64,000 nucleotides of DNA, from the sequence record KJ019086.1. One strand, written 5' to 3'. The notes under the pieces were generated by a model. It was not told the DNA's origin. It saw only the letters and a program-made list of their open reading frames with translations, and did no database searches. A program made the position numbers and the translations under genes. Shown piece after piece: positions 29,017 through 55,554 of the stretch (within the stretch, counting starts at the first letter, position 1; the number at the start of each line of letters is the position of its first letter).

Positions 29017-29571
29017 GTGGCAAAGGGTTATCGAATCAGGGGAGACTTTATTGCAAGTCTCATTAAACAACACGACTGTAAGATTGGTTATGAAATTGGG
29101 GTATCCAATGGTGCAACTTTTGGTAAGATCTTAAAGAAATGTGATAATATTGAGTGGCATGGTGTAGATCCATGGGTTGTATGTCCCGAGTATGATAAAC
29201 GCCCCAATGGTAAGGGTAAGTGGAATCATGATAGTAACTATGAGAAAGTTCAGGAGATTGTTAGTAAGTATCCAAAGCGTGCATATACCCACCGCATGAC
29301 CTCTGTAGAGGCTGCAAAGGAGGTAGAGGATAGAAGTATTGATATTATCTTTATAGACGGTCTGCACACCTACGAGGGGGTGAAGGAAGATCTAGAGGCT
29401 TGGGTGCCAAAGATCAAAATAGGTGGTATAATCTCTGGACATGACTATAAAGGTATGAAGAGACATGAGGGTGTGACTATACGAGTGAATGAAGTATTTG
29501 GTGAAGAAAACATTACTACTGGTCCAGATGTGACCTGGTGGTTATACAAAACGGAGGAACACGATGACTGA
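29017..29571 (+). CDS. Class I SAM methyltransferase (Methyltransf_24-like)
   Basis: YEIGVSNG, GVDPW, DIIFIDGLHTYEGVKEDLEAW, GGIISGHDY. Confidence 0.88.
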   Translation: MAKGYRIRGDFIASLIKQHDCKIGYEIGVSNGATFGKILKKCDNIEWHGVDPWVVCPEYDKRPNGKGKWNHDSNYEKVQEIVSKYPKRAYTHRMTSVEAAKEVEDRSIDIIFIDGLHTYEGVKEDLEAWVPKIKIGGIISGHDYKGMKRHEGVTIRVNEVFGEENITTGPDVTWWLYKTEEHDD

Positions 29572-30325
29572 GGGTTATGTTGTTATTGCACTTGGCGATA
29601 AGTATGTTCAACTCGCCAAGAACTTTGAAGATACACTAAGACAAAACGGTGACAATCGTCCTGTTCATGTTGTCACTGAAGACATGATTGATAAGGATAA
29701 TGATAAGTATAGGGACTGTGATGTTCCCAACGAAAGGTATAACTGCTACCCCAAACTTCACTTCAATGAGTATGCGATATTTGATCATAGTATCCTAATC
29801 GATGCCGATGTTCTGTGCGTAGGTGATACCCAACACGTTTGGGATATGTGTAAAGAACAGGAACAGTTTATTCTTCACCGTGGGTGGGGACAAGTTACTA
29901 AATGGAATAGAGAACTACAGAAGAAAGTGTGGGACGTTCATGGGTTCGTACCTCCTCGCATTCACGGAGCTTTCTGTTATCTAAGGAAGGCAGATATCAA
30001 TGAAGACTTCTTTGAATTTATCCAAAATAATGTGTGGTTTCAGTATACTGAATGGTGTACGGAAGATGTCAAAGCAAGACATCACAGGTTAAGTAGATCA
30101 GACCAGGTGATATATGCTATTGGTTATGGTAAGTTTGATCTCATGCCCTGTCAGTTAATGGAAGTCCCTATTATGACTCATATATTGACAGCGGCACACG
30201 TTAATCCTCCATACGATAGAATCACTTTTAAGGATCAAATTGGACCCGATTTACAACATCCAGTGGCATTTGCCCATATCGAACAACTATTTCAGGAGAG
30301 CACCCCAGAAAGTTTTCTAAGGTGA
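29564..30325 (+). CDS. GT-A fold (GT8-like) glycosyltransferase
   Basis: YPKL...ILIDADVL (DxD), SDQ motif; stop codon lies in element 2. Confidence 0.65.
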   Translation: MTEGYVVIALGDKYVQLAKNFEDTLRQNGDNRPVHVVTEDMIDKDNDKYRDCDVPNERYNCYPKLHFNEYAIFDHSILIDADVLCVGDTQHVWDMCKEQEQFILHRGWGQVTKWNRELQKKVWDVHGFVPPRIHGAFCYLRKADINEDFFEFIQNNVWFQYTEWCTEDVKARHHRLSRSDQVIYAIGYGKFDLMPCQLMEVPIMTHILTAAHVNPPYDRITFKDQIGPDLQHPVAFAHIEQLFQESTPESFLR

Positions 30326-30379
30326 CAGTCCACAAACTGGCACACAGGGCTTGGCAACCCTCCAAAAAGGTGCTATACT
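30321..30379 (+). promoter_or_regulatory. Element 2
   Basis: GGTGACA-N10-TGGCACA; TTGGCA-N17-TATACT. Confidence 0.85.
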
Positions 30380-30405
30380 ATCCAAGTAACCAAAGGAAAT
30401 GATTT

Positions 30406-30627
30406 ATGAAACCAGCAGAAATTCTCTACGAAATGCAATCCATTCGTAAAGTCTGGCATAATAATAATTTCGTCATCAGTCCCGAACTAAACCGTCGCTA
30501 TTGTGAACTTCTTAAACTCCGCCGTGAACGAGTTTCTCAATTCTATAAAGAGGGAAGGGTCGCTACAGGATCACAGACCCCCGACCTCAAAGCCCGAGAG
30601 GCAGCCAGACAAGCCGAGGTTGGTTGA
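30406..30627 (+). CDS. Hypothetical protein
   Basis: First ORF after element 2; LLKLRRERV motif. Confidence 0.65.
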   Translation: MKPAEILYEMQSIRKVWHNNNFVISPELNRRYCELLKLRRERVSQFYKEGRVATGSQTPDLKAREAARQAEVG

Positions 30628-30631
30628 GCCT

Positions 30632-30871
30632 ATGCAGGAACTTCTAGATACTTTCTATACAACTCCCTATGGTGATTTTGCCATTAGAAAGACTCGTTTC
30701 GGTGTTCATACCTCATATGATCGAGAGGGAACCGATTTGGTGACAGGTTTAGAGTGGATTGACGTATTCACCACCACACCTTGTCACCTACAATGGGAGA
30801 AGGAGGGTTACAAACCCCCCGAAGGTACAGTTCAAGCAACCTATGATAGTGTAGTCTCTGGAAAACTCTAA
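30632..30871 (+). CDS. Hypothetical protein
   Basis: Start moved to ATG 30632 to avoid overlap; ends YDSVVSGKL. Confidence 0.6.
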   Translation: MQELLDTFYTTPYGDFAIRKTRFGVHTSYDREGTDLVTGLEWIDVFTTTPCHLQWEKEGYKPPEGTVQATYDSVVSGKL

Positions 30872-31218
30872 TGGAAGACCGAAAATCACAACTATACAGC
30901 ATCATGTATGATGCTATCAGTGAACTAACTGAGCACGAGAGTGCTGAGGATATCTTTGACAATATTGTAGAGTATTTTGCTCTACGTGTTGAAGAAGCCC
31001 GTACTGAGGTTGATACTTACACGGATATGTTAAACGTATTCCGTAAAGACAACCCAGTGAGAGACGTTCCTAGTGCAGATCCATACAAGAGAACTGAATG
31101 GGAACACGCATTTGGTGATATGGATGACATCAATCAAACATACATGCCATCAAACCAACACATCTGGAACGAGTTTCTTAAGAATATCAAATTCACGGAC
31201 AATCAAGATACTAAATAA
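30871..31218 (+). CDS. Hypothetical protein
   Basis: Coupled 115-aa ORF. Confidence 0.6.
   Translation: MEDRKSQLYSIMYDAISELTEHESAEDIFDNIVEYFALRVEEARTEVDTYTDMLNVFRKDNPVRDVPSADPYKRTEWEHAFGDMDDINQTYMPSNQHIWNEFLKNIKFTDNQDTK
31211..31217 (+). promoter_or_regulatory. Possible late promoter before CP12-like gene
   Basis: CTAAATA followed by AGGAG RBS; similar CTAAATA at 31863 and 34154. Confidence 0.5.
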
Positions 31219-31238
31219 ACACTATCAGGAGAAAAGAG

Positions 31239-31436
31239 ATGACTACTGACCCAAACGATAAGTACGCTAAGTTCAAAGTACCATTTGGCACTAATGAACA
31301 TCACGAAGATGATGAATGGGATCCTACAACTGAGGGTAAAATCTCTGATTGGCACAACCGACATCAAGATAAACTCTTAGATGAGTTTTGTGACACTCAC
31401 CCAGGCGCACCCCAATGTAAGGTGTTTGACGATTAG
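31239..31436 (+). CDS. CP12-like protein (Calvin-cycle inhibitor family C-terminus)
   Basis: C-terminal LLDEFCDTHPGAPQCKVFDD matches the CP12 FC-x3-P-x4-C-x-V[YF]DD motif; N-terminus divergent. Confidence 0.6.
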   Translation: MTTDPNDKYAKFKVPFGTNEHHEDDEWDPTTEGKISDWHNRHQDKLLDEFCDTHPGAPQCKVFDD

Positions 31437-31484
31437 CAAAGTGGCACAAGACCACTTGACAGTACCACATTATTAGGTTACAGT
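31425..31484 (+). promoter_or_regulatory. Element 3 (degenerate left arm)
   Basis: TTTGACG-N10-TGGCACA; TTGACA-N17-TACAGT. Confidence 0.65.
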
Positions 31485-31488
31485 ACAT

Positions 31489-31677
31489 TTGTTCAAGAGG
31501 TTTCTCATGACTACCGTTGTTGACTCAGAGGTTATCTTTGCTGACGCTTTCAGTGAAGATGGTATAGACTACGGAACTGGTTATTATGTAACTAAGTTCT
31601 ATAGCAATGGTATGACCGACCTATTTGGACCATACAATTTTGAGGAAGACGCCCTCAATCTTGCCACTGTTTATTGA
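31489..31677 (+). CDS. Hypothetical protein
   Basis: ORF after element 3; exact start uncertain. Confidence 0.45.
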   Translation: MFKRFLMTTVVDSEVIFADAFSEDGIDYGTGYYVTKFYSNGMTDLFGPYNFEEDALNLATVY

Positions 31678-31894
31678 TTCCTTCCTTTTTATTATGACTT
31701 TTGACACCTACGAAGACGAAAGTATCTTCACTATTCTCGGTATTGCCGAAGAAGGCGAAGAAGAAACAGAAAACCCCTATTCCACTGAGGATACTAAAAC
31801 ACTAAAAGAATATGGCTATTGATTTCTCGTTCATTCTAGGTTTAGTTTTCATTTGGTTGGGACTAAATATCCGTATAGTGAGAGAGGTGGAATA

Positions 31895-32182
31895 GTGGAT
31901 TTCAGGGTAACAGTAAGAACACACACCGGGGCAGTTAGAGTTGTCGAGGTGAGCAACATGCCGAACGAGGAGGCAGCCAGAGCGGAAGCTGTTGGTATGA
32001 CTTTCGGTAGGGTTCTGCAGGTTGAGTGTTTAGATGAGATCCCAGAACAATCCAAACCTAAAAAGAAAAGAGGACCAGTTCAAGAGATTGAACGAGAACT
32101 TAGACCAGGTGAAACCGAAACAATTGTAACAGGTTACAATAGCAACCCGTTAGCAGTGTTCTTCACTTTAGATGTTTTTTAG
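31895..32182 (+). CDS. Hypothetical protein
   Basis: GTG start after GAGG RBS and CTAAATA at 31863. Confidence 0.55.
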   Translation: MDFRVTVRTHTGAVRVVEVSNMPNEEAARAEAVGMTFGRVLQVECLDEIPEQSKPKKKRGPVQEIERELRPGETETIVTGYNSNPLAVFFTLDVF

Positions 32183-32214
32183 GGGTTGACACACCCCTTT
32201 TTTTGTGCTATACT
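32181..32214 (+). promoter_or_regulatory. Element 4 (hairpin-promoter only, palindrome absent)
   Basis: AGGGGT-TGACAC-ACCCCT-T-run containing TTGACA; N17; TATACT. Confidence 0.75.
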
Positions 32215-32235
32215 TATACCAATCGCAGGAGATCA

Positions 32236-32502
32236 ATGGAAGAAAACATGTCGATTTCGACAGAACTTCTAACCAGCATAAACGACGCCATGTATGTTGC
32301 CACTAACAACGCAGCTACTTACATGCACGGTGATAGAGGTGCTGACGCTATGTGTCTCCTAAACGAGTGGACTACAGAGGATGGTGAATGTTTACTCACA
32401 CAATATGCAAAGGGTGAAGTATGTGAGCACATGGGAACTTTCATGTTTATCAACCTAGAAGAAGAAACATGGGGTGAGTTTATTATATCCGATGATGAGT
32501 AA
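32236..32502 (+). CDS. Hypothetical acidic protein
   Basis: ATG after AGGAG. Confidence 0.6.
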   Translation: MEENMSISTELLTSINDAMYVATNNAATYMHGDRGADAMCLLNEWTTEDGECLLTQYAKGEVCEHMGTFMFINLEEETWGEFIISDDE

Positions 32503-32749
32503 ACTATATACTACAGACAATTATTCAGGTACAATGAACCTAACTGAACATCAAAAGATTCAACTCTCACAATTTATTCATGAGTCGTTCTCTACATTCT
32601 ATGAGGAGGAACTAAAGTTTCAAGTAGAAACTCTAAAAGATGATGATAAGTTGGATTGGACTTATACAATCACACCAAGAGACTCAGGGGAGATTTATGA
32701 TAAGGTTCAGGAATTATTCACACTGGAAAGGCGTGTGACAGTAGAATAA
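32492..32749 (+). CDS. Hypothetical protein
   Basis: Stop lies in element 5. Confidence 0.55.
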   Translation: MMSKLYTTDNYSGTMNLTEHQKIQLSQFIHESFSTFYEEELKFQVETLKDDDKLDWTYTITPRDSGEIYDKVQELFTLERRVTVE

Positions 32750-32793
32750 GTGACACAAGGGGGGTTGGCAAACCCCCTTTTTGCTGCCATAAT
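32734..32793 (+). promoter_or_regulatory. Element 5
   Basis: TGTGACA-N10-TGACACA; TTGGCA hairpin + T-run; N17; CATAAT. Confidence 0.85.
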
Positions 32794-32815
32794 ATACTCA
32801 TACACACAAAGACCC

Positions 32816-32944
32816 ATGAACGTCCCCAACTGGCAGAAGCACTCCAAGAAAGACCAGAAGGGTCGCGGAGTGAGCAAGGGTCAGATGAGAGCCCGCAAAC
32901 AGGCTCTACGTGCCCTGAAGGCAAAGCTCCTTGTGACAGTCTAG
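32816..32944 (+). CDS. Small basic protein (42 aa)
   Basis: MNVPNWQKHSKKDQKGRGVSKGQMRARKQALRALKAKLLVTV; start moved out of the element. Confidence 0.65.
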   Translation: MNVPNWQKHSKKDQKGRGVSKGQMRARKQALRALKAKLLVTV

Positions 32945-32991
32945 GAAGTGGCACAAGCCCCCTAGGCAAGACCCCCAAACCCTGCTATACT
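32932..32991 (+). promoter_or_regulatory. Element 6
   Basis: TGTGACA-N10-TGGCACA; TAGGCA-N17-TATACT. Confidence 0.85.
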
Positions 32992-33014
32992 AAACACATA
33001 CAAAGGAAACCACC

Positions 33015-33425
33015 ATGGCTCGTCACTCTGAAGTTCTCATCCAAGGCACCGAGGTTCCCGGTCTTCGCATGATCGTAACCGTTCCAGTCGATCACACCTG
33101 GGCATCAGAAACCGCCGAGAGCATCTATGGATTTGGTGGCAACACCCAATATATCTGGCGGAAGTCTTGGGAGACTAACCAACCCGCCCCCCGTGGTGGT
33201 GGTTCCTCCTCCTCCTCCTCTGGCATGGGTCCTGGAGCTATCCTGATGGGGATGATTGGTCTTATCCTGGTTGCTGGTATTGGTTCCGCCTTCGAGGGTA
33301 ACGACACCCCCTCAGCTCCTTCCTATGACGCTCCCGCACCTGTTGAGAGGTCATACGTTCCACAGGCACCCGCAGCCTCCTATGACAATGGCCCTTGTCT
33401 CACCGCTAACTTCGAACCTTGTTAA
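33015..33425 (+). CDS. Hypothetical membrane protein
   Basis: Central TM segment, Ser/Gly and Pro/Ala linkers. Confidence 0.65.
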   Translation: MARHSEVLIQGTEVPGLRMIVTVPVDHTWASETAESIYGFGGNTQYIWRKSWETNQPAPRGGGSSSSSSGMGPGAILMGMIGLILVAGIGSAFEGNDTPSAPSYDAPAPVERSYVPQAPAASYDNGPCLTANFEPC

Positions 33426-33426
33426 T

Positions 33427-33600
33427 ATGAATGACTTTCGCCCCCCGCATCACACCACTACTAAAGAAGAGTGGGAGTTTATTTTCCAAACACAGATACA
33501 TAACTGCGCCCAACTAAAGAACACAGAACTCCAACGTTTTGTGTGTGTAGATAGTATGGGCAACAAAACTACCAAATATGTTATAGAATACAATGACTGA
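33427..33600 (+). CDS. Hypothetical protein
   Basis: ATG 33427, 57 aa. Confidence 0.5.
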   Translation: MNDFRPPHHTTTKEEWEFIFQTQIHNCAQLKNTELQRFVCVDSMGNKTTKYVIEYND

Positions 33601-33883
33601 AAAAGAAGTAGAGCTACACTTTGGGAGTGAGTATGAGGCTGGCATTGACTATGGGGATAGTGATGATTCAGACATTTTAGACTACACCAAAGAAGTAAGT
33701 GTCACACTAACCCGTTCAGATTGGAATTGGTTTGTTACACTGATGTCAGACTCCGTTAATAAGATGGAGGCTGCAGTTTCTGCACAAGGTATGGATGCTG
33801 AGTCCTTCCTTTCTATTGATGTTCTTCGCACTATTCGTAATGAAATCGCAACTCAGAGTGGGCTCACTCAATACATTGATTGA
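33593..33883 (+). CDS. Hypothetical acidic protein
   Basis: Overlapping-start 96-aa ORF. Confidence 0.6.
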   Translation: MTEKEVELHFGSEYEAGIDYGDSDDSDILDYTKEVSVTLTRSDWNWFVTLMSDSVNKMEAAVSAQGMDAESFLSIDVLRTIRNEIATQSGLTQYID

Positions 33884-33884
33884 G

Positions 33885-34157
33885 ATGCCAGTAGTGGCAC
33901 CTAAAGGTTATCACTATGAGGCAGTAGAACACAAACAAAACGTAGTGGCTATTTGGTTATGTGGAGGTCCAACATACCTCTACAAGATGGGAGAAACTGC
34001 TAGAACTATTCACTCCTTCTATAATATTAAGAAGAAAACCTGGTATGCACCTATCAACTGCAAGAAGCCAGGTAAGGAGGTATCAGTGGATAAGATACGA
34101 CCTTACACATCAATGCAACTGAACTACAACCCTCTGGAGATGCTACTATATGGCTAA
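33885..34157 (+). CDS. Hypothetical protein
   Basis: Start moved to ATG 33885; APKGYHYE...YAPIN-KKPGK...PYTSMQLN. Confidence 0.65.
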   Translation: MPVVAPKGYHYEAVEHKQNVVAIWLCGGPTYLYKMGETARTIHSFYNIKKKTWYAPINCKKPGKEVSVDKIRPYTSMQLNYNPLEMLLYG

Positions 34158-34192
34158 ATATATGTTATAATATCATAACATATATCACGAAT

Positions 34193-34414
34193 ATGAAGTC
34201 CAAAGACCAATACAAGAAAGAGTTTCAATTCACACTGAATACATCCGATGATAAGATCGCGGAAGAGAATATTCTTCACGATTTCGCCAGAGAGGTTTCA
34301 GTTATTGATGCTTTCCTACAGGGTGGGAAGGTATCACTAAAGGAGGCAAAACAGCGTATCAAAGATGTATACAAAGTGTGGAAGAACTCACTGAAAAACA
34401 ACAACCAAATGTAA
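34193..34414 (+). CDS. Hypothetical protein
   Basis: 73 aa; upstream CTAAATA and TGTTATAAT. Confidence 0.6.
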   Translation: MKSKDQYKKEFQFTLNTSDDKIAEENILHDFAREVSVIDAFLQGGKVSLKEAKQRIKDVYKVWKNSLKNNNQM

Positions 34415-34801
34415 ATGGAACCTTTCCTGCGAATGGCTGTTGATGTAGCTGAGTCTTCACCTTCTAGAAAGAAGGTTGGAGCTGTTCTAATGAATAAGAA
34501 CAAAGTTATAGCAACAGCCACAAATCATGATTGTAAATCACACCCTCTACAAGCAAAGTGGGCAGACCGTGTGGGACTATCTGAAAAGATATATCTACAC
34601 GCTGAGATGTCAGCAATGATCAAAGCCCGTGATGACTCAGACAAAATCGTTGTAGTTAGACTAGGAGGACATTCTGGTCACGAACTACGACAATCACGTC
34701 CTTGTCCTATATGTGAATCATACCTGAAATATTCGGGTATTGAACACGTATATTATTCCACTGGGAATAACAAATTTACCTATGAATACTGGGGGAAATG
34801 A
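34415..34801 (+). CDS. Cytidine/dCMP deaminase-family zinc protein
   Basis: HAE and PCPIC (HxE...PCxxC) motifs, KVGAVL N-terminal strand. Confidence 0.85.
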   Translation: MEPFLRMAVDVAESSPSRKKVGAVLMNKNKVIATATNHDCKSHPLQAKWADRVGLSEKIYLHAEMSAMIKARDDSDKIVVVRLGGHSGHELRQSRPCPICESYLKYSGIEHVYYSTGNNKFTYEYWGK

Positions 34802-34998
34802 TGGAAACGTTCACAGCAACTTGTCCCAAAGACTACGACAGACATCACTATTCAGTTGTCAACAAAGACGGCACGAATAGGATGTTTAGTAGTTGGGAAC
34901 TCGCACAGAGTTACTGGTGGCATACTAACAAACTTGGTACACTATCACACATCGATGTGATAGACTATAAAGAACAATCAAGAGGTTTTGGAGCATGA
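34798..34998 (+). CDS. Hypothetical protein
   Basis: Coupled ORF; DYDRHHY motif. Confidence 0.6.
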   Translation: MMETFTATCPKDYDRHHYSVVNKDGTNRMFSSWELAQSYWWHTNKLGTLSHIDVIDYKEQSRGFGA

Positions 34999-35213
34999 AC
35001 ATGTTGGGTAAACAATCAGAGACTGGGATGAAAGTAACCTTTCTTGGTTATATCCCAGAACAAGTGAAGTTCGCAGGATCTGACACACCAGACAAACTGA
35101 ATACCACTACAACATATACCATTGAACAGGTAAAACGATTCAACTCGTATACCAAGATCAAACTAGTTGGTGATGATCTGTGGTATAATTCAGTTCACTT
35201 TAGAGTTACTTAA
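34995..35213 (+). CDS. Hypothetical protein
   Basis: Coupled ORF. Confidence 0.55.
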   Translation: MNMLGKQSETGMKVTFLGYIPEQVKFAGSDTPDKLNTTTTYTIEQVKRFNSYTKIKLVGDDLWYNSVHFRVT

Positions 35214-35413
35214 TGGATAACATCTATGGGCGTGAGTATCACAGACATGCTGTTGATTATGCTCTGATGATAGGTGAGTTAGAAGGAACTTACACTCACC
35301 TGAAACGAATGTCTTACTTTGAGGATGCTGCTATCCTTGAAGAAATGAAGAAACGTTACTACAAGATCTACTTCCGTACCTTACGTGAAGAAAGAGAAAA
35401 AGCAGAAAACTAA
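35213..35413 (+). CDS. Hypothetical protein
   Basis: Coupled ORF. Confidence 0.55.
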   Translation: MDNIYGREYHRHAVDYALMIGELEGTYTHLKRMSYFEDAAILEEMKKRYYKIYFRTLREEREKAEN

Positions 35414-35431
35414 CCTAATTGAGGATTTTGA

Positions 35432-35740
35432 ATGGTGTTAACTTGGACCGACGAAGAGAAAGTAAACCTAACCCGTGCAGAGGTTAGTATTCATGGGGAG
35501 AATATCACTCCAGATAAACTAGACAACAAAACTCTACCAACAGATATTCATGTCATTGAATATGAGATGGAAGGTGTAACTTACTACGACGCGGTTCGTG
35601 CCTACAAAATGGTTAGCATCTTTGATGTATATCACGATAAGCTAAAAGGTGGTGGTAAAGTTGTTAGAATCACCAACGGGTATGGTAGCATTAGACCTAA
35701 CCTGTGGAACAACAATAAGAGTGAGAAAGGTGATGAGTGA
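35432..35740 (+). CDS. Hypothetical protein
   Basis: GAGG RBS; YDAVRAYKMVSIFD-YHD...GYG-IRPNLW. Confidence 0.65.
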   Translation: MVLTWTDEEKVNLTRAEVSIHGENITPDKLDNKTLPTDIHVIEYEMEGVTYYDAVRAYKMVSIFDVYHDKLKGGGKVVRITNGYGSIRPNLWNNNKSEKGDE

Positions 35741-35912
35741 GAGGAAGGCAGAGGACTGGATTAGTGAGTGGAAAGGAATGAATGATGAGTTCATTGAAGA
35801 AGACACTATGTTTAGAGTTCAGATTCCCTCTGCTGAAAAGACACAAGAATGGATGGATAGAGAACCATTAATCTTAAAAGTAGATCACTCGAAGTATTAT
35901 TTTGATGACTGA
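35733..35912 (+). CDS. Hypothetical protein
   Basis: ATG 35733 overlapping upstream stop region. Confidence 0.5.
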   Translation: MSERKAEDWISEWKGMNDEFIEEDTMFRVQIPSAEKTQEWMDREPLILKVDHSKYYFDD

Positions 35913-36108
35913 AGAAGATCCAATGATCAACTGGAAACAGAAGATGATGAAACATTGCACCCACGATTGGGAAAAGCAACTATTACGTGAAGGTGCCACA
36001 TCATCTGTGACAGCAATGGGTATAATGTCACTAAAGAAACGATACAAAAGGATTATGGGTATTGATGATGATCCAAAGCCACCTGTAGTTCAGTACGCCT
36101 CCTATTGA
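35902..36108 (+). CDS. Hypothetical protein
   Basis: 68-aa ORF. Confidence 0.55.
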   Translation: MMTEEDPMINWKQKMMKHCTHDWEKQLLREGATSSVTAMGIMSLKKRYKRIMGIDDDPKPPVVQYASY

Positions 36109-36114
36109 TACTTT

Positions 36115-36519: not shown

Positions 36520-36574
36520 CAGTTGAATAAGTGACACAAGGGGGGTAGGCACCCCCCTTTTTTTGTGCCATAAT
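36515..36574 (+). promoter_or_regulatory. Element 7
   Basis: TGTGACA-N10-TGACACA; TAGGCA hairpin + T7; N17; CATAAT. Confidence 0.85.
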
Positions 36575-48463: not shown

Positions 48464-48505
48464 TACACTAAGTAACACTCACCAAACACACTAACTAACA
48501 ACATC

Positions 48506-48892
48506 ATGGGCACACGTTCACGCATCGGTTATCAACTTCCAACTGGCAATATCGTTTCTGTGTATCATCATTGGGATTCCTATCCTACGTGGTTGGGTAA
48601 GAGACTCACCAAAAACTATATCACTGATAAAACTATCACCGAACTGATTGATGGTGGTGATATGTCATCTATCGAGAGTAATCGCGACTGGGATCTTAAT
48701 GAAGTTGCCCCACATGTTCAGTATTATTCACAACGTGGTGACACTGGATGTGAACCCCTCCTTCACAAAAACCAAAGAGAGTTTATCAAAACCACTGTAG
48801 ACTGTTGGGGTGAGTATTCCTACCTATACAGGAATGGACGTTGGTTCTGTTATGATGAGAAGGGTAAGTCTGTTTCACTGAAGAACTTATGA
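48506..48892 (+). CDS. Conserved-looking phage hypothetical protein
   Basis: MGTRSRIG...SVYHHWDSYPTWLG...LIDGGDMS...EYSYLY. Confidence 0.75.
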   Translation: MGTRSRIGYQLPTGNIVSVYHHWDSYPTWLGKRLTKNYITDKTITELIDGGDMSSIESNRDWDLNEVAPHVQYYSQRGDTGCEPLLHKNQREFIKTTVDCWGEYSYLYRNGRWFCYDEKGKSVSLKNL

Positions 48893-49224
48893 TTAGCAAA
48901 CTGTTTTCACTATCTCTTGTTCTTGTGGGTTCTATCTTACCCGCACAGGCATACCCCAATATCGTATATTGGGAACGCATTGATTGTAACCTCATCACCG
49001 AAACTATCCAGAAGTGTGATAGGTACAATGGGCAGAATGGAGTTTTCATCGAATCATACTATCTGGACATATACACAAACGAACATAGCTTTATAGATCC
49101 ACGAGGACCTGAAATAGTTGTACCTGATGTAATAGAAGAAGAGACACTAGATGATATCCAACCTGATGTAGAATACAACGAACCGATAACAACAACAGAC
49201 CCACTCCTGAATGATAGTTACTGA
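48889..49224 (+). CDS. Secreted hypothetical protein
   Basis: Signal peptide ending PAQA; acidic tail. Confidence 0.55.
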   Translation: MISKLFSLSLVLVGSILPAQAYPNIVYWERIDCNLITETIQKCDRYNGQNGVFIESYYLDIYTNEHSFIDPRGPEIVVPDVIEEETLDDIQPDVEYNEPITTTDPLLNDSY

Positions 49225-49381
49225 TTTTTCCATATTCCTGTCGGCAACCACCTCCTATCATACCCCCTGCCAAACCGATATGGTTTTTTCACCTTTCCCG
49301 TCTAGTGGCTCACTGGTGTCTCAGCGAGGCACAAATGAGATTTCACCCCCATACCCCCAGACAGAGCAAAACTCATAACCA
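49221..49381 (+). repeat. ~160-bp non-coding block, copy B (partner at 39413-39574)
   Basis: Same motif order and spacing as copy A; abuts element 24. Confidence 0.8.
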
Positions 49382-49440
49382 TGTGACAGTTGGATTAGTG
49401 GCACACGAAAGCCCGCAAACCCCTCAGGGGGTGCTATACT
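49382..49440 (+). promoter_or_regulatory. Element 24 (non-consensus -35)
   Basis: TGTGACA-N10-TGGCACA; CCCGCA-N17-TATACT. Confidence 0.85.
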
Positions 49441-49462
49441 AAACCCATACACAACAAAACCA

Positions 49463-49819
49463 ATGATCTACTCTATCACTCACCAGGAGACTGGCATTAC
49501 GTATTCAGTTAGCACTGAAGATATTCGTAAAGTTGCTAACATCCTCCCAATGAACTCTGAGGAGTTGGCTGACATGATGACAGGTCTGAATTGTGACTCA
49601 TATGCAGATATGGCAGAAGAGTATATTGAAGAAGTTGCGGATATGTATGATGATGTGACACTGGCAACTGATAAGTTTATGAGTAGCACTGATGAAAGGG
49701 CACAAACAACGTTCGCCTACTATCGTATCATGAACTGTGATAACTCTGATGAAGTGACTACACAATATTGGCGTGATGACGCTATGGCTATGATCACTGA
49801 CTACAATGATCGCAAATGA
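49463..49819 (+). CDS. Hypothetical acidic protein
   Basis: First ORF after element 24. Confidence 0.6.
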   Translation: MIYSITHQETGITYSVSTEDIRKVANILPMNSEELADMMTGLNCDSYADMAEEYIEEVADMYDDVTLATDKFMSSTDERAQTTFAYYRIMNCDNSDEVTTQYWRDDAMAMITDYNDRK

Positions 49820-50127
49820 AACGCTACGGACTTTATTGGCTGAGAGCTATCACCCTAGGTGCTGGTCTAAACTTTGTTCTGACTGGTTATCTCATGGGTC
49901 ACCAAAAGTGGAAGTTTCAACATGCAGCTCCACTCTCAGCGTTTATCTGCGTGAATCTATCGTATGTGGCGGATCGTCTTATCTTTGGCGATAAGAAGGA
50001 ACCTGAAGATTTAGATCCAGATACTATTGTTATATCAACCCCACATTGTTGCCCCGTATGTTCAGAGTATCCTTGCACTTGTGACAGTTGGGAAAGTGGC
50101 ACAACCCCCCTAGGCAACACCCTCTGA
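49816..50127 (+). CDS. Hypothetical membrane protein with C-terminal Cys cluster
   Basis: Two hydrophobic segments; CCPVC..CTC; reads into element 25. Confidence 0.5.
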   Translation: MKRYGLYWLRAITLGAGLNFVLTGYLMGHQKWKFQHAAPLSAFICVNLSYVADRLIFGDKKEPEDLDPDTIVISTPHCCPVCSEYPCTCDSWESGTTPLGNTL

Positions 50128-50139
50128 ACCTGCTATACT
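50080..50139 (+). promoter_or_regulatory. Element 25
   Basis: TGTGACA-N10-TGGCACA; TAGGCA-N17-TATACT. Confidence 0.9.
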
Positions 50140-50163
50140 AAACACATACCAAAGGAACCAACC

Positions 50164-50361
50164 ATGAAAGTCTCTCAGGAAGTTTTCAAGAGTTACATTC
50201 AGATACTGGATGAAAACACACAAACATCATGGGATATCCTAAATGTTTTGAATGATATTGTTAGAGGTGACTGGGATAACTCAGTCCAGTATTGTTTGGA
50301 AAATCCATCAGGCGACCCTATGGATGATTTCAACTACGCAGGCAGTCGCCACCACTATTGA
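50164..50361 (+). CDS. Hypothetical protein
   Basis: Ends DDFNYAGSRHHY. Confidence 0.65.
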   Translation: MKVSQEVFKSYIQILDENTQTSWDILNVLNDIVRGDWDNSVQYCLENPSGDPMDDFNYAGSRHHY

Positions 50362-50390
50362 TCACTAACTCACCACACTAACTAACAACT

Positions 50391-50675
50391 ATGACACGCA
50401 CTCCAATGACAGTCACCCTCAAGCGTAGCGACTGGGAATGTTATACAGACACCCCCGATACTATCATCGAAACTATCAACTCATACTTCTCTTATGTGTT
50501 ATCAACTAAAGATAACGCGTTTGATGCACAGTCTGAGATATTCAAGTTTCTGAATATGTTTAGTGAGTTTGGGTTTATGGATAGTGAGTGCCTAGAATGT
50601 GCAACTAGAGTCATCAACAGATATTTCGATTCATACCTCTCCCGCTGGAGTCAGGTGGGTGATGTGACAGTCTAG
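50391..50675 (+). CDS. Hypothetical protein
   Basis: Ends DVTV-stop inside element 26. Confidence 0.65.
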   Translation: MTRTPMTVTLKRSDWECYTDTPDTIIETINSYFSYVLSTKDNAFDAQSEIFKFLNMFSEFGFMDSECLECATRVINRYFDSYLSRWSQVGDVTV

Positions 50676-50721
50676 GAAGTGGCACACGCTTTCCCGCAAA
50701 CCCCTCAGGGGGTGCTATACT
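50663..50721 (+). promoter_or_regulatory. Element 26 (non-consensus -35)
   Basis: TGTGACA-N10-TGGCACA; CCCGCA-N17-TATACT. Confidence 0.85.
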
Positions 50722-50743
50722 ATATTCATACCAAAGGAACCAA

Positions 50744-51061
50744 ATGAATTTCAGAACACTAGCACTCACCACCACCCTGGCTCTCTCCACTGTCCTAGGT
50801 GGTTTGGCTCCTGAAGCTAAGTCAGCTGACTTTTGTGACAACATCCCCGGCAACTCGGGATACGTTTGTGTTACCATGGGTCTCTGGTTCGACTTGGTTG
50901 AGGCAGACATACCCGCCTTTGGTGGTAAAGAGTCATTACACATCACCTGTGACAATGGCTGGTCATATCGATCTAATGGTAACTGGAACAAAGACGCCGC
51001 TTCCCTTGTGGCTAAGGAATACTGTGAAGGTGCTGGCTGGAACAGCCACTCCGAGGTGTGA
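50744..51061 (+). CDS. Secreted 4-Cys protein
   Basis: Signal peptide MNFRTLAL...APEAKS; similar to 47057-47338; stop in element 27. Confidence 0.7.
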   Translation: MNFRTLALTTTLALSTVLGGLAPEAKSADFCDNIPGNSGYVCVTMGLWFDLVEADIPAFGGKESLHITCDNGWSYRSNGNWNKDAASLVAKEYCEGAGWNSHSEV

Positions 51062-51116
51062 CAGTCTAGGAAGTGGCACAAGCCCCCTAGGCAAGACCCC
51101 TCGGGTCTGCTATACT
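51057..51116 (+). promoter_or_regulatory. Element 27
   Basis: TGTGACA-N10-TGGCACA; TAGGCA-N17-TATACT. Confidence 0.9.
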
Positions 51117-51140
51117 ATATTCATACCAAACAAAGAAACC

Positions 51141-51407
51141 ATGTTTCCACACCTCCACATCTCTGAATCCAACCTCGGACCTCACACCTCCACGTTTTTC
51201 AAAGTATCATCACAACCACAAGATGAGTGGCAGAATGGCATTTTCCATAACTCACCTTATGGTATCTTTCACCTTCATTCTGAGAAAGGTGTTTATAAGT
51301 TGGAACTATCTTCCTCAGGTTTGAATACACCTAAGTTCAGGAAGTGTAAGTGTGAAGATGAACTTACCGCACTCACTAAGATTCGTCAGTGGATGGATAA
51401 GTTCTGA
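51141..51407 (+). CDS. Hypothetical protein
   Basis: Start moved to ATG 51141; WQNGIFHNSPY motif. Confidence 0.65.
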   Translation: MFPHLHISESNLGPHTSTFFKVSSQPQDEWQNGIFHNSPYGIFHLHSEKGVYKLELSSSGLNTPKFRKCKCEDELTALTKIRQWMDKF

Positions 51408-51442
51408 TATTATCTAACACAAACCACTCACAACAAACTATC

Positions 51443-51616
51443 ATGAACCGACTAGAACTACTGACCCAACGTGAACAACTGATGGAGAGGATTGACTCTA
51501 TCTGTGATGAATTCTTTTATAAGAACTATAATGGAGATACATCAGAAGCAGATGAATTAGTTCGTATTCTATGTGATGCTGTTTGTGAAACCATAGACCC
51601 AGCGGGCATGGTGTGA
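51443..51616 (+). CDS. Small acidic protein (57 aa, not in ORF track)
   Basis: MNRLELLTQREQLMEEIDSI...LCDAVCETID; stop in element 28. Confidence 0.6.
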   Translation: MNRLELLTQREQLMERIDSICDEFFYKNYNGDTSEADELVRILCDAVCETIDPAGMV

Positions 51617-51671
51617 CAGTTGGAGAAGTGGCACAAGCCCCCTAGGCAAACCCCTCCATACCTGCTATACT
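51612..51671 (+). promoter_or_regulatory. Element 28
   Basis: Identical to element 29 over 61 bp. Confidence 0.9.
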
Positions 51672-51696
51672 ATATTCATACCAAAGGAAACCGACC

Positions 51697-51960
51697 ATGT
51701 TCCAAGTCTGTACCGAAGACGCTCTAGATCACCGCTACACAATTGATGAGTTTGAGACACTGGAAGAAGCCCAATCTTGTTATAACGAGTGTGTGAAGGT
51801 TGGAGCTGAGGGTTATGAGATTTCGGTTGAGTTAGAGGAAATCATTGGCGATCATGATGATTACGTTTCCATCGAGTTCACCGAGTGGTTTACACAAGAG
51901 AGTTGGGAGGAAGCACATCCATGGAATGATAAGGAAGGAGTTTGGGAGAACGTTGACTGA
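51697..51960 (+). CDS. Very acidic hypothetical protein
   Basis: 87 aa between identical elements 28 and 29. Confidence 0.65.
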   Translation: MFQVCTEDALDHRYTIDEFETLEEAQSCYNECVKVGAEGYEISVELEEIIGDHDDYVSIEFTEWFTQESWEEAHPWNDKEGVWENVD

Positions 51961-51961
51961 C

Positions 51962-52021
51962 TGTGACAGTTGGAGAAGTGGCACAAGCCCCCTAGGCAAA
52001 CCCCTCCATACCTGCTATACT
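51962..52021 (+). promoter_or_regulatory. Element 29
   Basis: TGTGACA-N10-TGGCACA; TAGGCA-N17-TATACT. Confidence 0.9.
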
Positions 52022-52048
52022 AAACACATACCAAACAAAGGAAACCAC

Positions 52049-52390
52049 ATGACCACCACCCAAACCAAAACCGAGTTCCTCACCGAGGCAATGATCGAAC
52101 AGGTGAACAACCTCTGGAAGGTTTATAACGTGGAGTCAGGTCACACCATCACCCCACTTCTTAAGTATGAAGTGGCTAAGAAGTACATCAAGGTCTATCG
52201 TTTAGACGTTGTGAATGGTGAGATTCGTGACGGTCGTTCAGTGTTTATGTTTATCGATAAGGAGACTGGTGCAGTTCTGAAACCAGCCTCATGGAGAGCA
52301 CCCGCTAAGGGTATCCGGTTCTACATTGAACAGTTGGCTGAGTCTCCTGAGCTCGTGGATCAGTATGGTAGTTTCCTCTACCGTCGCTGA
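52049..52390 (+). CDS. Conserved-looking phage hypothetical protein
   Basis: Start moved to ATG 52049; KKYIKV...FIDKETGAVLKPASWRAPAKGIR. Confidence 0.75.
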   Translation: MTTTQTKTEFLTEAMIEQVNNLWKVYNVESGHTITPLLKYEVAKKYIKVYRLDVVNGEIRDGRSVFMFIDKETGAVLKPASWRAPAKGIRFYIEQLAESPELVDQYGSFLYRR

Positions 52391-52450
52391 TGTGACAGCC
52401 ACCAAAGTGGCACAGGGGGGCTAGGCAGCTCCCCTTCTTTATGCTATACT
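52391..52450 (+). promoter_or_regulatory. Element 30
   Basis: TGTGACA-N10-TGGCACA; TAGGCA hairpin; N17; TATACT. Confidence 0.9.
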
Positions 52451-52472
52451 ATATTCATACCAAAGGAACCAG

Positions 52473-53726
52473 ATGGCTCTCACTCTCCGCCCCCACCAAC
52501 TAGAAGCACTTCAGGTGATGGCTGAGACTCGTCTTGGTCAGATATTAGTTCCGACTGGTGGCGGCAAGACTCTTATCGCTATCATGGACGTTGTGAGGAC
52601 TCTAGAGAACGCAGGAACCCCTCAGACTATCGTTGTGGTGGCACCTAGGATATTGTTAGCCCAGCAACTCTGTAGTGAGTATATGGAGGTTCTGAGTGAT
52701 AGGTTCGCCAACGTTATCCCCGCCCATATTCACTCAGGTCACACACCTCACTTCAGCACCACTAACATTCAGAAGATCCATCTTTTTGAGAAGATGATGG
52801 ATACCGCCAACCTCCACCGCATATACTTCACCACATACAACTCACTTCCACGTTTAGCAGAAGCAGGTGTGAGTGTCGATACTATTATGTTTGATGAGGC
52901 ACATAACTCGACTCGTAATGACTTCTATCCCGCTACCAAGTATTTCTCACAGACCGCTAGTCGTTGTTATTTCTTTACAGCAACTCCCCGTCACTCGGTA
53001 ACATCCAAGAGACACGGAATGAACGAGTCTGATGTATATGGTCAGGTCATCTACAATGTTCCTGCCCCTACACTTGTTCAGGGTGGGTTTATCATCCCCC
53101 CACAGGTTCGTGTTAAAGAGATGGAGTTTGTAGCTAAACATGAGCTCATCTCACAACGTGATACAAACCACCTCATCTCTTGTATTGATGACAACCACAC
53201 GAGCAAAGTTCTAGTTTGTGCTAAGTCAGTCAAACAGATCATGCGTATGTTTAGTGAGACCGATATCAGCCAACAACTTGATGATCGTGGTTTCTCCTAT
53301 ATGTACATCTCAGCTAAGACTGGTGGTGTTATCAATGGCAAGAAAGTATCACGTACTATGTTCTTCGATACTCTAAATGAGTGGGGTAAGGATAACAACA
53401 AGAAGTTTATTGTTCTTCATCATTCTATTCTCTCTGAGGGTATCAATGTAAGTGGTCTAGAGTCAGCTATCTTCTTACGTACTATGGATCACATTACTAT
53501 CAGTCAAACGATTGGTCGTGTGATTCGACTTCACAAGGATGATGCTAAAGCTATGAGAGATGGTTCGATTCGCCCCGGTGATCTTAACTCCTATACTAAG
53601 TCCTTTGGTTTGTGTATTGTTCCAGTTTATTCTAAAACACAACAAACAGTTGCCAAGTCTCTTCAGGCAGTTGTTAATACCGTCTTTGTGGAAGGTGAAG
53701 CAGCAACCACAGTTGTGAGGCGTTAG
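52473..53726 (+). CDS. Superfamily 2 DEAH-box helicase (ResIII-like)
   Basis: LRPHQ, VPTGGGKT (Walker A), FDEAH, FTATP, LSEGINV, QTIGRVIR. Confidence 0.9.
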   Translation: MALTLRPHQLEALQVMAETRLGQILVPTGGGKTLIAIMDVVRTLENAGTPQTIVVVAPRILLAQQLCSEYMEVLSDRFANVIPAHIHSGHTPHFSTTNIQKIHLFEKMMDTANLHRIYFTTYNSLPRLAEAGVSVDTIMFDEAHNSTRNDFYPATKYFSQTASRCYFFTATPRHSVTSKRHGMNESDVYGQVIYNVPAPTLVQGGFIIPPQVRVKEMEFVAKHELISQRDTNHLISCIDDNHTSKVLVCAKSVKQIMRMFSETDISQQLDDRGFSYMYISAKTGGVINGKKVSRTMFFDTLNEWGKDNNKKFIVLHHSILSEGINVSGLESAIFLRTMDHITISQTIGRVIRLHKDDAKAMRDGSIRPGDLNSYTKSFGLCIVPVYSKTQQTVAKSLQAVVNTVFVEGEAATTVVRR

Positions 53727-53834
53727 TATGAATTATCAAAACCAAGCTCTTGTGATACTTCTAGGTCTAATGGTTATAGCTGGTATTAACGTAATTCACT
53801 ATGAACAACAATGGCAATGTAGGATGCATCAAAC

Positions 53835-54545
53835 CTATTGTTTTGTTTCTGAATAATACCATAGGTAACCCTTCCAACGCGAACCCCATTTGATAGAAGT
53901 ACAAATACCCTTCCCACGATCCTCCTCATTAAAGGATCTCATCGCATCACTAATAGAGTCAAAGACGGGAGTAACATGACCAGTCTTATGAACTCCATAG
54001 ACTTGTTTCTTATTCTTAGCGTGTTTATGAATCCACCATTTGTAACCATATGCCGAACCCTCTCTTGTGATACTTCTCCTGATATTTGATGGCCTACCAT
54101 TCACAAACTCAGCGGCAGCAACCCAACCGTGAAAGGTTTTGATCTTACCCGTTTCCAAGCACCTACACTTGATCACGTTCTTATCATGTTTCTTAGGTTT
54201 CTTCTTTCGTTGATAACCCCAACGCCTATCCCCATTATGATATGACTCTTTATTATTCAGCTTCCTACCAGTATGTTCTAACACCAAATTGTTATATTCA
54301 GGTTGATACTTATTCATCCAATATTCCACTCTCTCTTTAACCTTATTATCATTCACTTCTTCTAGTATGCGTATAGTGAAGTCATCGGAGTTATAGTAAC
54401 CCAACGCATTCGACAGTGGAGTATTTTCCTCCTTATGATTTTCCAATATCCCAGCCCAAACTTTATTGAGGGGAAGCGTATCATAACCGATGTATTTGTG
54501 AGAGGTTTGTCTATTCAAGATGATGTAGATGTTTGTGATGCTCAC
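53835..54545 (-). CDS. GIY-YIG-like homing endonuclease with NUMOD1-type C-terminal repeats, possibly inactive
   Basis: NIYIILN...KYIG; two C-terminal units (TFHGWVAAAEF...SAYGYKW; VFDSISDAMR...WKGYLW); only minus-strand gene in the region. Confidence 0.7.
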   Translation of the reverse strand: MSITNIYIILNRQTSHKYIGYDTLPLNKVWAGILENHKEENTPLSNALGYYNSDDFTIRILEEVNDNKVKERVEYWMNKYQPEYNNLVLEHTGRKLNNKESYHNGDRRWGYQRKKKPKKHDKNVIKCRCLETGKIKTFHGWVAAAEFVNGRPSNIRRSITREGSAYGYKWWIHKHAKNKKQVYGVHKTGHVTPVFDSISDAMRSFNEEDRGKGICTSIKWGSRWKGYLWYYSETKQ

Positions 54546-54660
54546 GGAAGATACTCTCTATTCTGGTTGTATATATAAACATTATCTTTTTTTATCACAT
54601 GTGCCTGTTTATCTCCCTTATGAATGTTATAATAGGAAAGGAGAGAAAGAGATGAATAAG

Positions 54661-54951
54661 CAATGGAATCACCTAGGTAAGAGTTATCTAATAGAAGGAA
54701 CTAAACAATACATCAACCAATGGAATCACCTAAGAGAAGGTATCACTAATCCCCTATAGAAAGACCCAATAGAATGTAATCTAATCCATTGTAATCACCT
54801 ATAGGATAGTATCATATAACGAGGTCTTTACATCTCACTAAGCTCCTCCTAAACTCCACTGCCCGTTGCATATAAAGATCCATAGAAAGGTCTCTGCCCA
54901 CTGAGCCTAAACCTCTCTGCCCGTTGCAACCTAAGCCCGTTATAACACGGG
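54661..54951. repeat. Cluster of short direct repeats in AT-rich intergenic DNA
   Basis: CAATGGAATCACCTA at 54661 and 54718 (degenerate at 54787); CTGCCCGTTGCA at 54859 and 54917. Confidence 0.7.
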
Positions 54952-55002
54952 ACTTCGGAAATGTCAAGGGATCTCCGAAAAACTTAATATTTCCGAGACA
55001 CC

Positions 55003-55062
55003 CCAGACACCCACGGAACTGGCACAAACCCCCTTGGCAAACCCCCCGAAATGGCATATACT
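55003..55062 (+). promoter_or_regulatory. Element 31 (degenerate left arm)
   Basis: CCAGACA-N10-TGGCACA; TTGGCA-N17-TATACT. Confidence 0.8.
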
Positions 55063-55087
55063 ATATTCATACACAAGGGAACCACCC

Positions 55088-55321
55088 ATGGAATTCATCC
55101 AAACTGACTACCCCGCTAACATGGCTCCCAATGTTATGGAGAGGAACTATGGTCGGGGTATCATCCTGACTCAGGTTAATGAGGATGGTGTCATTCCATT
55201 CTCAGTATTCAATTTCAAAAAAGAGGATTGGAACTGGGGAGCTGACTACTACATGACCGAGCATAACTTTTATACACTAGAGGAGGCAGAGGCGGTAGTG
55301 ACTCAGCTCGTAGCCAGCTGA
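55088..55321 (+). CDS. Hypothetical protein
   Basis: Start moved to ATG 55088; stop in element 32. Confidence 0.6.
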   Translation: MEFIQTDYPANMAPNVMERNYGRGIILTQVNEDGVIPFSVFNFKKEDWNWGADYYMTEHNFYTLEEAEAVVTQLVAS

Positions 55322-55369
55322 ACCACTGGCACATGGGGGCTAGGCACAGCCCCCTCTATACCCTATACT
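55310..55369 (+). promoter_or_regulatory. Element 32
   Basis: GTAGCCA-N10-TGGCACA; TAGGCA hairpin; N17; TATACT. Confidence 0.85.
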
Positions 55370-55395
55370 ATATTCATACCAAAGGGAACCACCCC

Positions 55396-55554
55396 ATGAC
55401 CAAAGCAACTCAGAGACCTTCCACCCAGAGCCGTTACACCAGTCAGGTAGCCATGGATCGTAAGGCAGCAGCACTCCAGAGGGCTGAGGAGCGTCGCCTC
55501 ACGGGTTCTGCCGACGTGGATCAGGTGAACCGCCTCTACACTGTGACACTCTGA
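55396..55554 (+). CDS. Small hypothetical protein (52 aa)
   Basis: Start moved to ATG 55396; stop in element 33. Confidence 0.55.
   Translation: MTKATQRPSTQSRYTSQVAMDRKAAALQRAEERRLTGSADVDQVNRLYTVTL

Follow-up and report, generated by a model that had tools for sequence, protein, structure and literature searches.

Do the genes of a densely packed phage early region move as units bounded by a repeated element, or do the stop codons that fall inside that element only reflect genome compaction? The question is raised by a 64,000-nt stretch of sequence record KJ019086.1 (hereafter the window), in which a composite element of about 85 nt is repeated in front of small genes and upstream open reading frames (ORFs) end within it. 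A first-pass annotation, made from the letters alone, had read each element with its leader and ORF as a cassette that is captured, shuffled or deleted by crossover at or near the left arm of the element. Between positions 25000 and 58000 the window is identical to KJ019086.1 base for base, so that record coordinates equal window coordinates. The record belongs to Synechococcus phage ACG-2014f isolate Syn7803US17 (Kyanoviridae, Atlauavirus), a T4-like cyanomyovirus. The ACG-2014f group comprised 45 records in the phage collection with 94-99.9% identity, which made the comparison between strains suggested in the annotation feasible. Altogether, the locus is probably a hyperplastic early region with promoter elements resembling promoter-early stem-loops (PeSLs), in which compaction placed the stop codons and homologous recombination moved the cassettes.

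A profile built from the obvious copies gave exactly 33 matches with nhmmer in the 64 kb, all on the plus strand and within 27442-55616 (Table 1). No further copy was found with this profile elsewhere in the 64 kb. Each copy precedes a small gene or a short operon. With the first T of TGTGACA numbered as rel 1, the left arm TGTGACA covers rel 1-7 and is followed by a 10-nt spacer and the right arm TGGCACA at rel 18-24. The heptamer TGTGACA occurred 33 times, compared with 18.1 ± 3.9 in shuffled sequences. A -35 box (TAGGCA or TTGGCA, rel 32-37) is separated by a 17-nt spacer from TGnTATACT, with the -10 box at rel 55-60 and mostly preceded by TG. Matches to the promoter and terminator consensus coincide with element positions. 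The conserved leader of about 20 nt is ATACCAAAGGAACC-like and includes a Shine-Dalgarno sequence, with AAGGA located 5-10 nt upstream of the ATG, which lies at about rel 82-90. About 16 of the 33 copies have a G5-6/C5-6 hairpin with the -35 box in its loop. In about eight of these the hairpin is followed by a T-run, which makes these copies look like intrinsic terminators. About five further copies have the hairpin between the -35 box and the -10 box (about 21/33 with a hairpin in total). No stable hairpin was present in about 12/33; the folding z-score of copy 51612 was -0.5. Elements 38407 and 39575 show weak -10 boxes and long leaders (38460-38526 and 39630-39680), which are first purine-rich and then CA-rich (GGAGTGGGAGAGA...CCCCCCACAC). 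Similar long leaders occur in divergent environmental copies from loci of the IMG/VR database such as L113, L042 and L089. Leaders of this type could represent a conserved structure of the 5' untranslated region or a small RNA.

Stop positions were taken from the deposited coding sequence (CDS) calls and measured against rel 1. The upstream stop was inside or flush against the element in 26/33 copies, and inside it or at most 10 nt upstream of the left arm in 30/33. Seven CDSs take their stop from the left-arm TGA (rel 3-5) and two from the -35 box, as TAG (rel 32-34); ten end in the spacer, with the last base at rel 12-16, and three stop flush with the left arm (rel 0). The first-pass annotation had counted about 25 of 33 such cases, and all stop coordinates listed there agree with the deposited CDSs. 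Four more were added, at 46531 (rel 3), 32182 (rel 28), 50127 (rel 48) and 38470 (rel 64). Its statement that unrelated genes share C-termini encoded by the element also held. Three proteins end in VTV and one in VTVE, VTPGKLAQDP in one tail corresponds to VTPQEVAQAS in another, and a final V was found in six of the seven cases with the left-arm TGA. The seventh, with its stop at 30325, ends in R and has the arm GGTGACA. Among 189 non-identical copies from divergent IMG/VR contigs that had an upstream ORF, the stop fell at rel 0-17 in 138. By position, 58 copies had it at rel 5, 60 in the spacer and 20 flush with the arm; in 18 more it preceded the arm by at most 10 nt. The stop placement is a property of the whole element family, beyond ACG-2014f. 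A stop signal designed for all three frames was considered and rejected, with stops in all frames within rel 1-35 in only 3/33 copies of the window and 31/237 environmental copies. An enrichment of spacer stops over shuffled sequences is circular, because ORFs end there.

Compaction alone is enough for these stop positions and explains them best. The compaction itself was directly visible: 48 array junctions without an element had a median gap of -1 nt, with genes overlapping or abutting, compared with 79.5 nt for the 30 junctions with an element, which is about the length from the spacer to the ATG. The caveat of the first-pass annotation that extreme compaction could give a similar pattern was therefore right. 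In a compact genome, every ORF would abut the next functional sequence. The first 16 nt of the element appear to tolerate coding and offer TGA in one frame and often TAA, TAG or TGA in the others. Because of these early stops, an incoming ORF would end at the first one it meets, and its last 1-15 residues would be encoded by the element.

Judged from two protein families, such tails are neither conserved nor ancestral. CDS 49816..50127 enters element 50080 by 15 codons. Its homologues at 55-77% identity are mostly 87-94 amino acids long, compared with 103 here, and distant homologues end 0-10 residues after the last invariant Cys. The tail of about 10-14 residues, which ends in SGTTPLGNTL, is missing from these distant homologues. 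It is retained in the closest relatives alone, as a translation of the right arm and -35 box. In the family of CDS 44173..44367, the core ends in ..KFDR and all tails are different. This comparison with homologues in other contexts had been proposed together with the cassette model, and the element-encoded tails are missing there. A local tblastn search with eight tail-bearing ORFs against IMG/VR loci gave almost no homologues, and the tail families were instead obtained from database protein searches. Annotation calls for caution here, since many small cyanophage proteins end in 1-15 residues that are promoter sequence. In the family of CDS 49816..50127 (P0001-P0046), the N-terminus carries an invariant MKRYxLYWLRA..TLGAGLN and the C-terminus a CPxC...YPCxC motif, suggestive of a membrane protein that ends in a zinc-ribbon-like part. 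Its members occur widely in cyanophage contigs from the environment.

Gene gain, loss and replacement were catalogued from chained BLAST alignments of the window with six sister genomes, including all array differences of at least 40 bp. An end was scored as lying in an element at rel -10 to +97 in either genome. Altogether, 27 distinct events were found, with both ends in elements in 18, one end in two and none in seven. Element windows cover 12.6% of the array, giving a chance of about 1.6% per event for both ends and a binomial P of about 1e-26. With five debatable events set aside, 13/27 still had both ends in elements. The breakpoints between strains are strongly non-random relative to the elements, contrary to the random pattern named in the first-pass annotation as refuting its model, and this supports the claim of a cassette array of the PeSL kind. 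Single cassettes were precisely lost or gained, with joint overlaps of 74-84 nt, at 41011/41268, 36515/37586, 46529 and 51962, and overlaps of this length indicate repeat-to-repeat deletion. In replacements, the unlike DNA begins at the ATG (rel 58-97) and continues up to the left arm that follows (rel -6 to +15). The most variable slot has element 36515 as its left edge, with four alternative contents among the sister genomes: two small genes here, and elsewhere a methyltransferase with a helicase, two large unknown genes, or nothing. Element 42863 represents presence or absence of a whole element. Together with about 13 nt it is missing from four sister genomes, in which both genes overlap by ATGA. 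Element 49382 is involved in an indel of an element plus its gene. Pairs of environmental contigs showed element-bounded indels in 8/54, with about 0.1 expected. Metagenome contigs break at elements and join different elements, which is weak evidence because of the short flanks. Contigs assembled from public runs contained one backward joint between elements, from 51094 to 47579, with flanks too short for it to be read as an excised mini-circle of the kind formed between neighbouring PeSLs.

The positions of the exchange points were determined from mosaic elements. Five chimeric elements follow the upstream parent through the -35 or -10 box and the downstream parent from the leader on, with a single parental switch each. 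When the same slot was compared across genomes, the left arm and spacer usually go with the upstream ORF and the leader with the downstream ORF, and the core goes with either. All four combinations were found for the spacer and core classes as well as for the core and leader classes. Other joints were located at the boundary of spacer and right arm or at the left arm, and in one deletion joint the native TGA of the gene coincides with the left-arm TGA. Crossover at or near the left arm, which had been assumed in the first-pass annotation, is thus not the rule, since the chimeric switches lie in the -10 box and leader. The mosaics would fit homologous recombination or gene conversion between dispersed repeats, rather than a recombinase with a fixed crossover point. 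Recombination in T4-like phages requires less than 50 bp of homology (cited in PMC2839356).

Based on these observations, the elements would be start sites of early transcription by the host RNA polymerase; element 52391, for instance, is predicted to drive the helicase gene 52473..53726. Copies with a hairpin would halt read-through from upstream, the job described for PeSLs. Judged from the sister genomes, the elements are also where genes are chiefly gained, lost and replaced. The general homologous recombination of the phage probably acts anywhere along the dispersed repeats of about 85 nt. It would yield precise deletions and insertions of cassettes, replacements with the ATG at one edge and the left arm at the other, and mosaic elements.

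The bipartite motif at the start of the element was traced in other genomes. Its environmental consensus is TGTG[A/C]CA-GT-N5-AA-[G/C]TGGCACA, followed eight bases on by the TTG of the -35 box. The strict 20-base pattern of both arms was present in at least 120 stretches of IMG/VR viral contigs, and the environmental counts of 378, 237 and 189 copies rest on the stretches listed. Less than 10% of the sequence was alignable to ACG-2014f at nucleotide level in 105 of the 120. Proteins shared with the window, such as the DUF6267 protein, gp25 and gp6, were found in 91 of 118 listed loci, identifying these as the equivalent region of other cyanomyoviruses. With nhmmer, 378 element copies were detected in the listed contigs. 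In cultured phages, a search for the full element gave the 45 ACG-2014f records and no others. The strict pattern had only six matches in 596 Gb of bacterial and archaeal genomes, none of them in marine Synechococcus. A host transcription-factor site shared with host promoters was rejected on this basis; a host factor with a looser site is compatible with it. Three short contigs with the strict motif (L129, L130 and L132) were binned as metagenome-assembled genomes of Polynucleobacter, Nanopelagicaceae and Pirellulales. They could be mis-binned phage contigs from lake metagenomes, and the element family would then also be present in freshwater phages.

A hairpin between the two arms was considered and rejected. 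The commonest combination at positions 5 and 20 is the A-G mismatch, with 167 copies, followed by C-G (52), A-T (9) and C-T (8), and no covariation between the arms was detected in these 237 environmental copies. The dominance of the mismatch and the missing covariation indicate that the arms do not pair. A typical arm hairpin reached only -5.8 kcal/mol, and Rfam gave no match in the window. The arms are more likely a protein-binding site. A literature search revealed no paper pairing the motif with cyanophages, and neither promoters nor PeSLs are mentioned in the paper on the genomes of these isolates. Of all features here, the upstream motif with its family-wide conservation is of greatest interest. 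A conserved, phage-specific motif of this kind is a handle for finding early genes of cyanophages in metagenomes and for finding the factor that reads it.

Several observations weigh against the favoured reading of PeSL-like promoter elements with compaction-placed stops and homologous cassette recombination. Seven of the 27 events lie away from the elements. Two are insertions of HNH endonuclease genes and the others are located at short non-element repeats or gene junctions. An example is a repeat of about 25 nt at 39649, in the leader of element 39575, and again at 39861, which mediates a deletion in sister genomes. Survival bias could also contribute, as only indels that keep expression persist, and the enrichment at elements is not ascribable to mechanism alone. 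Promoter and terminator activity are predicted from consensus matches, and the bipartite motif is left unaccounted for. Finally, left-arm position 5 is A, giving TGA, in 58/60 copies entered in the TGA frame, compared with 84/129 otherwise (Fisher P = 5e-7). Such a bias suggests selection for the stop itself, beyond what pure compaction would predict; because the copies are not independent in phylogenetic terms, it is treated as a lead only. One model that accommodates the motif takes it as the site of a phage protein, packaged in the virion or made very early, which would control the early promoters and target recombination or gene conversion to the cassette boundaries. The embedded stops, with A in place of C at position 5 where an ORF comes in by the TGA frame, would then be a selected fail-safe that terminates any captured ORF. 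This model is tentative and rather improbable at present. The opposite view is that compaction explains everything. The elements would then be ordinary early promoters, stop overlap and indel clustering would result from selection for a small expressed genome, and the repeats would have no role in recombination. Junctions without an element are equally tight, the stop placement requires nothing more, the seven indels away from elements agree with it, and a different promoter element in phage S-CAM7 is likewise abutted by TGA stops. However, joint overlaps of 74-84 nt equal the element length and are a signature of repeat-to-repeat recombination. Together with the one parental switch per chimeric element, the four-gamete patterns among element modules and the four alternative gene contents between the same two elements in one slot, they make compaction as the sole cause unlikely.

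Site-specific recombination as in integrons, with the palindrome as an attC-like site for a dedicated phage recombinase and ORFs ending at the cassette boundary, was also weighed. The right-hand ends of replaced segments on the left arm (rel -6 to +15), one deletion joint exactly at the left-arm TGA, and the slot before gene 51141, where the left arm is the point of reassortment between upstream gene and element, are in line with it. The motif is also highly conserved, including the A/G mismatch, in hundreds of divergent phage contigs and essentially missing from bacterial genomes. However, all five mapped chimeric crossovers lie in the -10 box or leader and not in the palindrome, mosaic elements have exchange points on both sides of the core, and the left-hand ends of variable segments are at the ATG. 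Each cassette has its own promoter, no integrase or recombinase was annotated in 25-58 kb or among ten scanned proteins, pairing covariation between the arms is lacking, and short non-element repeats yield the same kind of deletion. A dedicated recombinase is quite unlikely. A relic origin appears similarly improbable. Here, left arm and spacer would be the non-regulatory 3' end of an ancestral gene (C-D-S-W, TGT GAC AGT TGG) that was copied with the spreading promoter. Many distant homologues of CDS 49816..50127 do end in C-[D/E]-S-W, with the last Cys invariant. This ending is kept in a homologue located before a terminator hairpin without the right arm, a homologue before a different element type ends in C-D, and frame 1 of the commonest left arm plus spacer in the window translates as CDSW. 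The motif is 95-100% conserved at each position, both in copies that ORFs enter in any of the three frames and in copies before which the ORF stops, and neutral relics would not keep such conservation. Conservation is higher still in the right arm, which most ORFs do not reach.

Table 1. Coordinates of the early-gene array and of the 33 element copies in the window, with the position of the upstream stop and further characteristics.
Feature	Position	Strand	Upstream stop	Further characteristics
Hyperplastic early-gene array	27442..55625	+		About 80 small ORFs, 33 element copies; between tail-fibre genes and baseplate (gp25/gp6) module
Copy, terminator type	27442..27533	+	Ends at rel -7	G/C hairpin and T-run around -35 box
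Copy	30321..30405	+	Left-arm TGA, CDS 29564..30325	Left arm GGTGACA
Degenerate copy	31425..31506	+	TAG in spacer (31436)	Left arm TTTGACG
Partial copy	32155..32235	+	rel 28 (32182)	Promoter and terminator hairpin only, without bipartite motif
Copy, terminator type	32734..32815	+	TAA in spacer (32749)	Tail VTVE
Copy	32932..33014	+	TAG in spacer (32944)	Tail VTV
Copy, terminator type	36515..36599	+	Left-arm TGA, CDS 36115..36519	
Copy, terminator type	37137..37222	+	Flush (37136)	Left arm TGTTACA
Copy	37586..37667	+	TAA in spacer (37600)	Left arm coding-degraded (TATGCCA)
Copy	38407..38526	+	CDS 38336..38470 enters by 21 codons	Perfect palindrome TGTGACA..TGTCACA; weak -10 box; long leader
Copy	39575..39680	+		TGTGCCA..TGGCACA; long leader
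Copy	40352..40436	+	Left-arm TGA (40356)	Hairpin between -35 and -10 boxes
Copy, degenerate left arm	40668..40756	+	TGA in spacer (40679)	
Copy	41011..41090	+		With 41268 flanks a one-gene cassette precisely missing from four sister genomes
Copy	41268..41351	+		Downstream partner in the 41011/41268 cassette deletion
Copy, terminator type	42863..42946	+	Flush (42862)	
Copy	43186..43267	+	TAG in spacer (43198)	Tail VTV
Copy	44334..44417	+	TAG of -35 box (44367)	Upstream CDS enters by 11 codons
Copy	46529..46615	+	46531	Left arm TAGGACA; one sister genome with an extra cassette here
Copy, degenerate left arm	46748..46830	+	TAA in spacer (46762)	
Copy	46974..47056	+	TAG of -35 box (47007)	
Copy	47526..47609	+	Left-arm TGA (47530)	
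Copy	47830..47914	+	Left-arm TGA (47834)	G/C hairpin without T-run
Copy	49382..49462	+		Element and gene 49463..49819 missing from three sister genomes and metagenome contigs
Copy	50080..50163	+	CDS 49816..50127 reads through	Left-arm TGT codes for the last invariant Cys of the family
Copy	50663..50743	+	TAG in spacer (50675)	Tail VTV; left edge of gene-replacement slot
Copy	51057..51140	+	Left-arm TGA (51061)	Gene-to-element joint reassorts among sister genomes
Copy	51612..51696	+	Left-arm TGA (51616)	
Copy	51962..52048	+		One to three extra cassettes here in three sister genomes
Copy, terminator type	52391..52472	+	Flush (52390)	Precedes helicase gene 52473..53726
Copy, degenerate left arm	55003..55087	+		Comes after the only minus-strand gene of the array
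Copy, degenerate left arm	55310..55395	+	TGA in spacer (55321)	
Copy	55542..55625	+	TGA in spacer (55554)	

Sister genomes have 490-860 bp between the left part and the -10 box and leader of element 55542, which identifies the copy in the window as a fusion of two elements. Further features of the region were recorded. The sole minus-strand gene of the array, at 53835-54545 between the helicase gene and element 55003, is annotated as 'cox1-i7 protein'. The annotation suggests that it is homing-endonuclease-like, and its length is 522 nt in some sister genomes compared with 711 nt here. The HNH endonuclease genes of the sister genomes are located at L004:13531-13998 (KJ019058.1) and L002:28724-29119 (KJ019059.1). 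Their insertion sites in the window, 39411/39467 and 51398/51443, are not element-bounded there; the second insertion carries a complete element that is predicted to drive the downstream gene. No other gene of the array is shared as widely as the one at 43268-44173 for a DUF6267 / phrog_455 protein, which had matches at protein level in 48 of the 118 listed divergent IMG/VR loci. No gene is annotated in about 155 nt at 49225-49381, and this stretch is kept in the sister genomes, even in those without element 49382. A 55-codon ORF (49211..49378) spans part of it and ends 4 nt before the left arm of that element. Outside the array, positions 14001-16000 showed a GC content of 0.485 and an AT skew of -0.17, compared with about 0.40-0.44 and about 0 in the rest of the window.

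Cyanomyoviruses are among the most abundant viruses of the ocean. With 45 sequenced wild isolates, ACG-2014f offers a natural experiment for counting the single events of cassette turnover.

Among known systems, integrons share with this locus a tandem array of small, mostly unknown genes in the same orientation, an imperfect inverted repeat behind each gene that often includes the stop codon, and a cassette content that varies between close relatives. In contrast to the mostly promoterless integron cassettes, which are read from Pc, each unit here has its own promoter, and neither a fixed crossover point nor structural covariation of the arms was observed. An integrase or recombinase was neither annotated in the 25-58 kb part of the 227-kb genome nor found among the ten scanned proteins. 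The first-pass annotation had named PeSL or integron-like arrays as models; the PeSL part stood, and the integron part did not, given the own promoters and the spread crossovers.

A related case is the equivalent region of Synechococcus phage S-CAM7 (Mazuvirus). Its elements have a similar -10 box and leader (CCTATACT...CATA) and G/C hairpins with T-runs, and upstream TGA stops abut them, flush in several copies. These elements have another upstream motif (CCACTGAAC...CAGGGCACC), and TGTGACA-N10-TGGCACA was not found in 22 kb of this phage (L134, KU686213.1 28000-50000). The repeated intergenic element of S-CAM7 reads CCACTGAAC..CAGGGCACC..AATGCCCTATACT, with a terminator-type variant AGTGTCCACTGCCCC..GGGGC followed by a T-run.

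PeSLs were described in the T4-like phages RB49/phi1, T4/PST and KVP40/nt-1 as a strong sigma-70-like promoter with a poly-G/poly-C stem-loop placed between the boxes or around them; hyperplastic regions contain them at high density, and indels and replacements are bounded by them (Arbiol et al. 2010, PMC2839356; Comeau et al. 2014, PMC4122927). The locus agrees with them in the dense same-strand array within a hyperplastic region of small ORFans and in the near-consensus sigma-70 promoter with 17-nt spacing, which lies directly before a small ORF; the 3' end of the element bears a Shine-Dalgarno sequence. Degraded half-elements and element-bounded indels and replacements between close relatives (18/27) are further common traits, and poly-G/poly-C stem-loops, putative terminators or attenuators, lie around the -35 box or between the boxes in about 21/33 copies. 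The elements differ in the bipartite motif TGTGACA-N10-TGGCACA, which takes the place of an AT-rich stretch in those PeSLs. PeSL sequences vary between phage groups, and the difference may therefore be a group-specific trait. Upstream ORFs usually overlap the element here, whereas they stop before PeSLs, a T-run follows the hairpin in only about 8/33 copies, and the host is a cyanobacterium. The sole cyanophage paper found to mention PeSLs concerns S-PM2 and reports no dense array (PMC4503421). The PeSL model of modular gene shuffling is extended here from coliphages and vibriophages to marine cyanomyoviruses. The kind of array is known; new are its presence in a cyanophage and the phage-specific bipartite motif upstream of the promoter.

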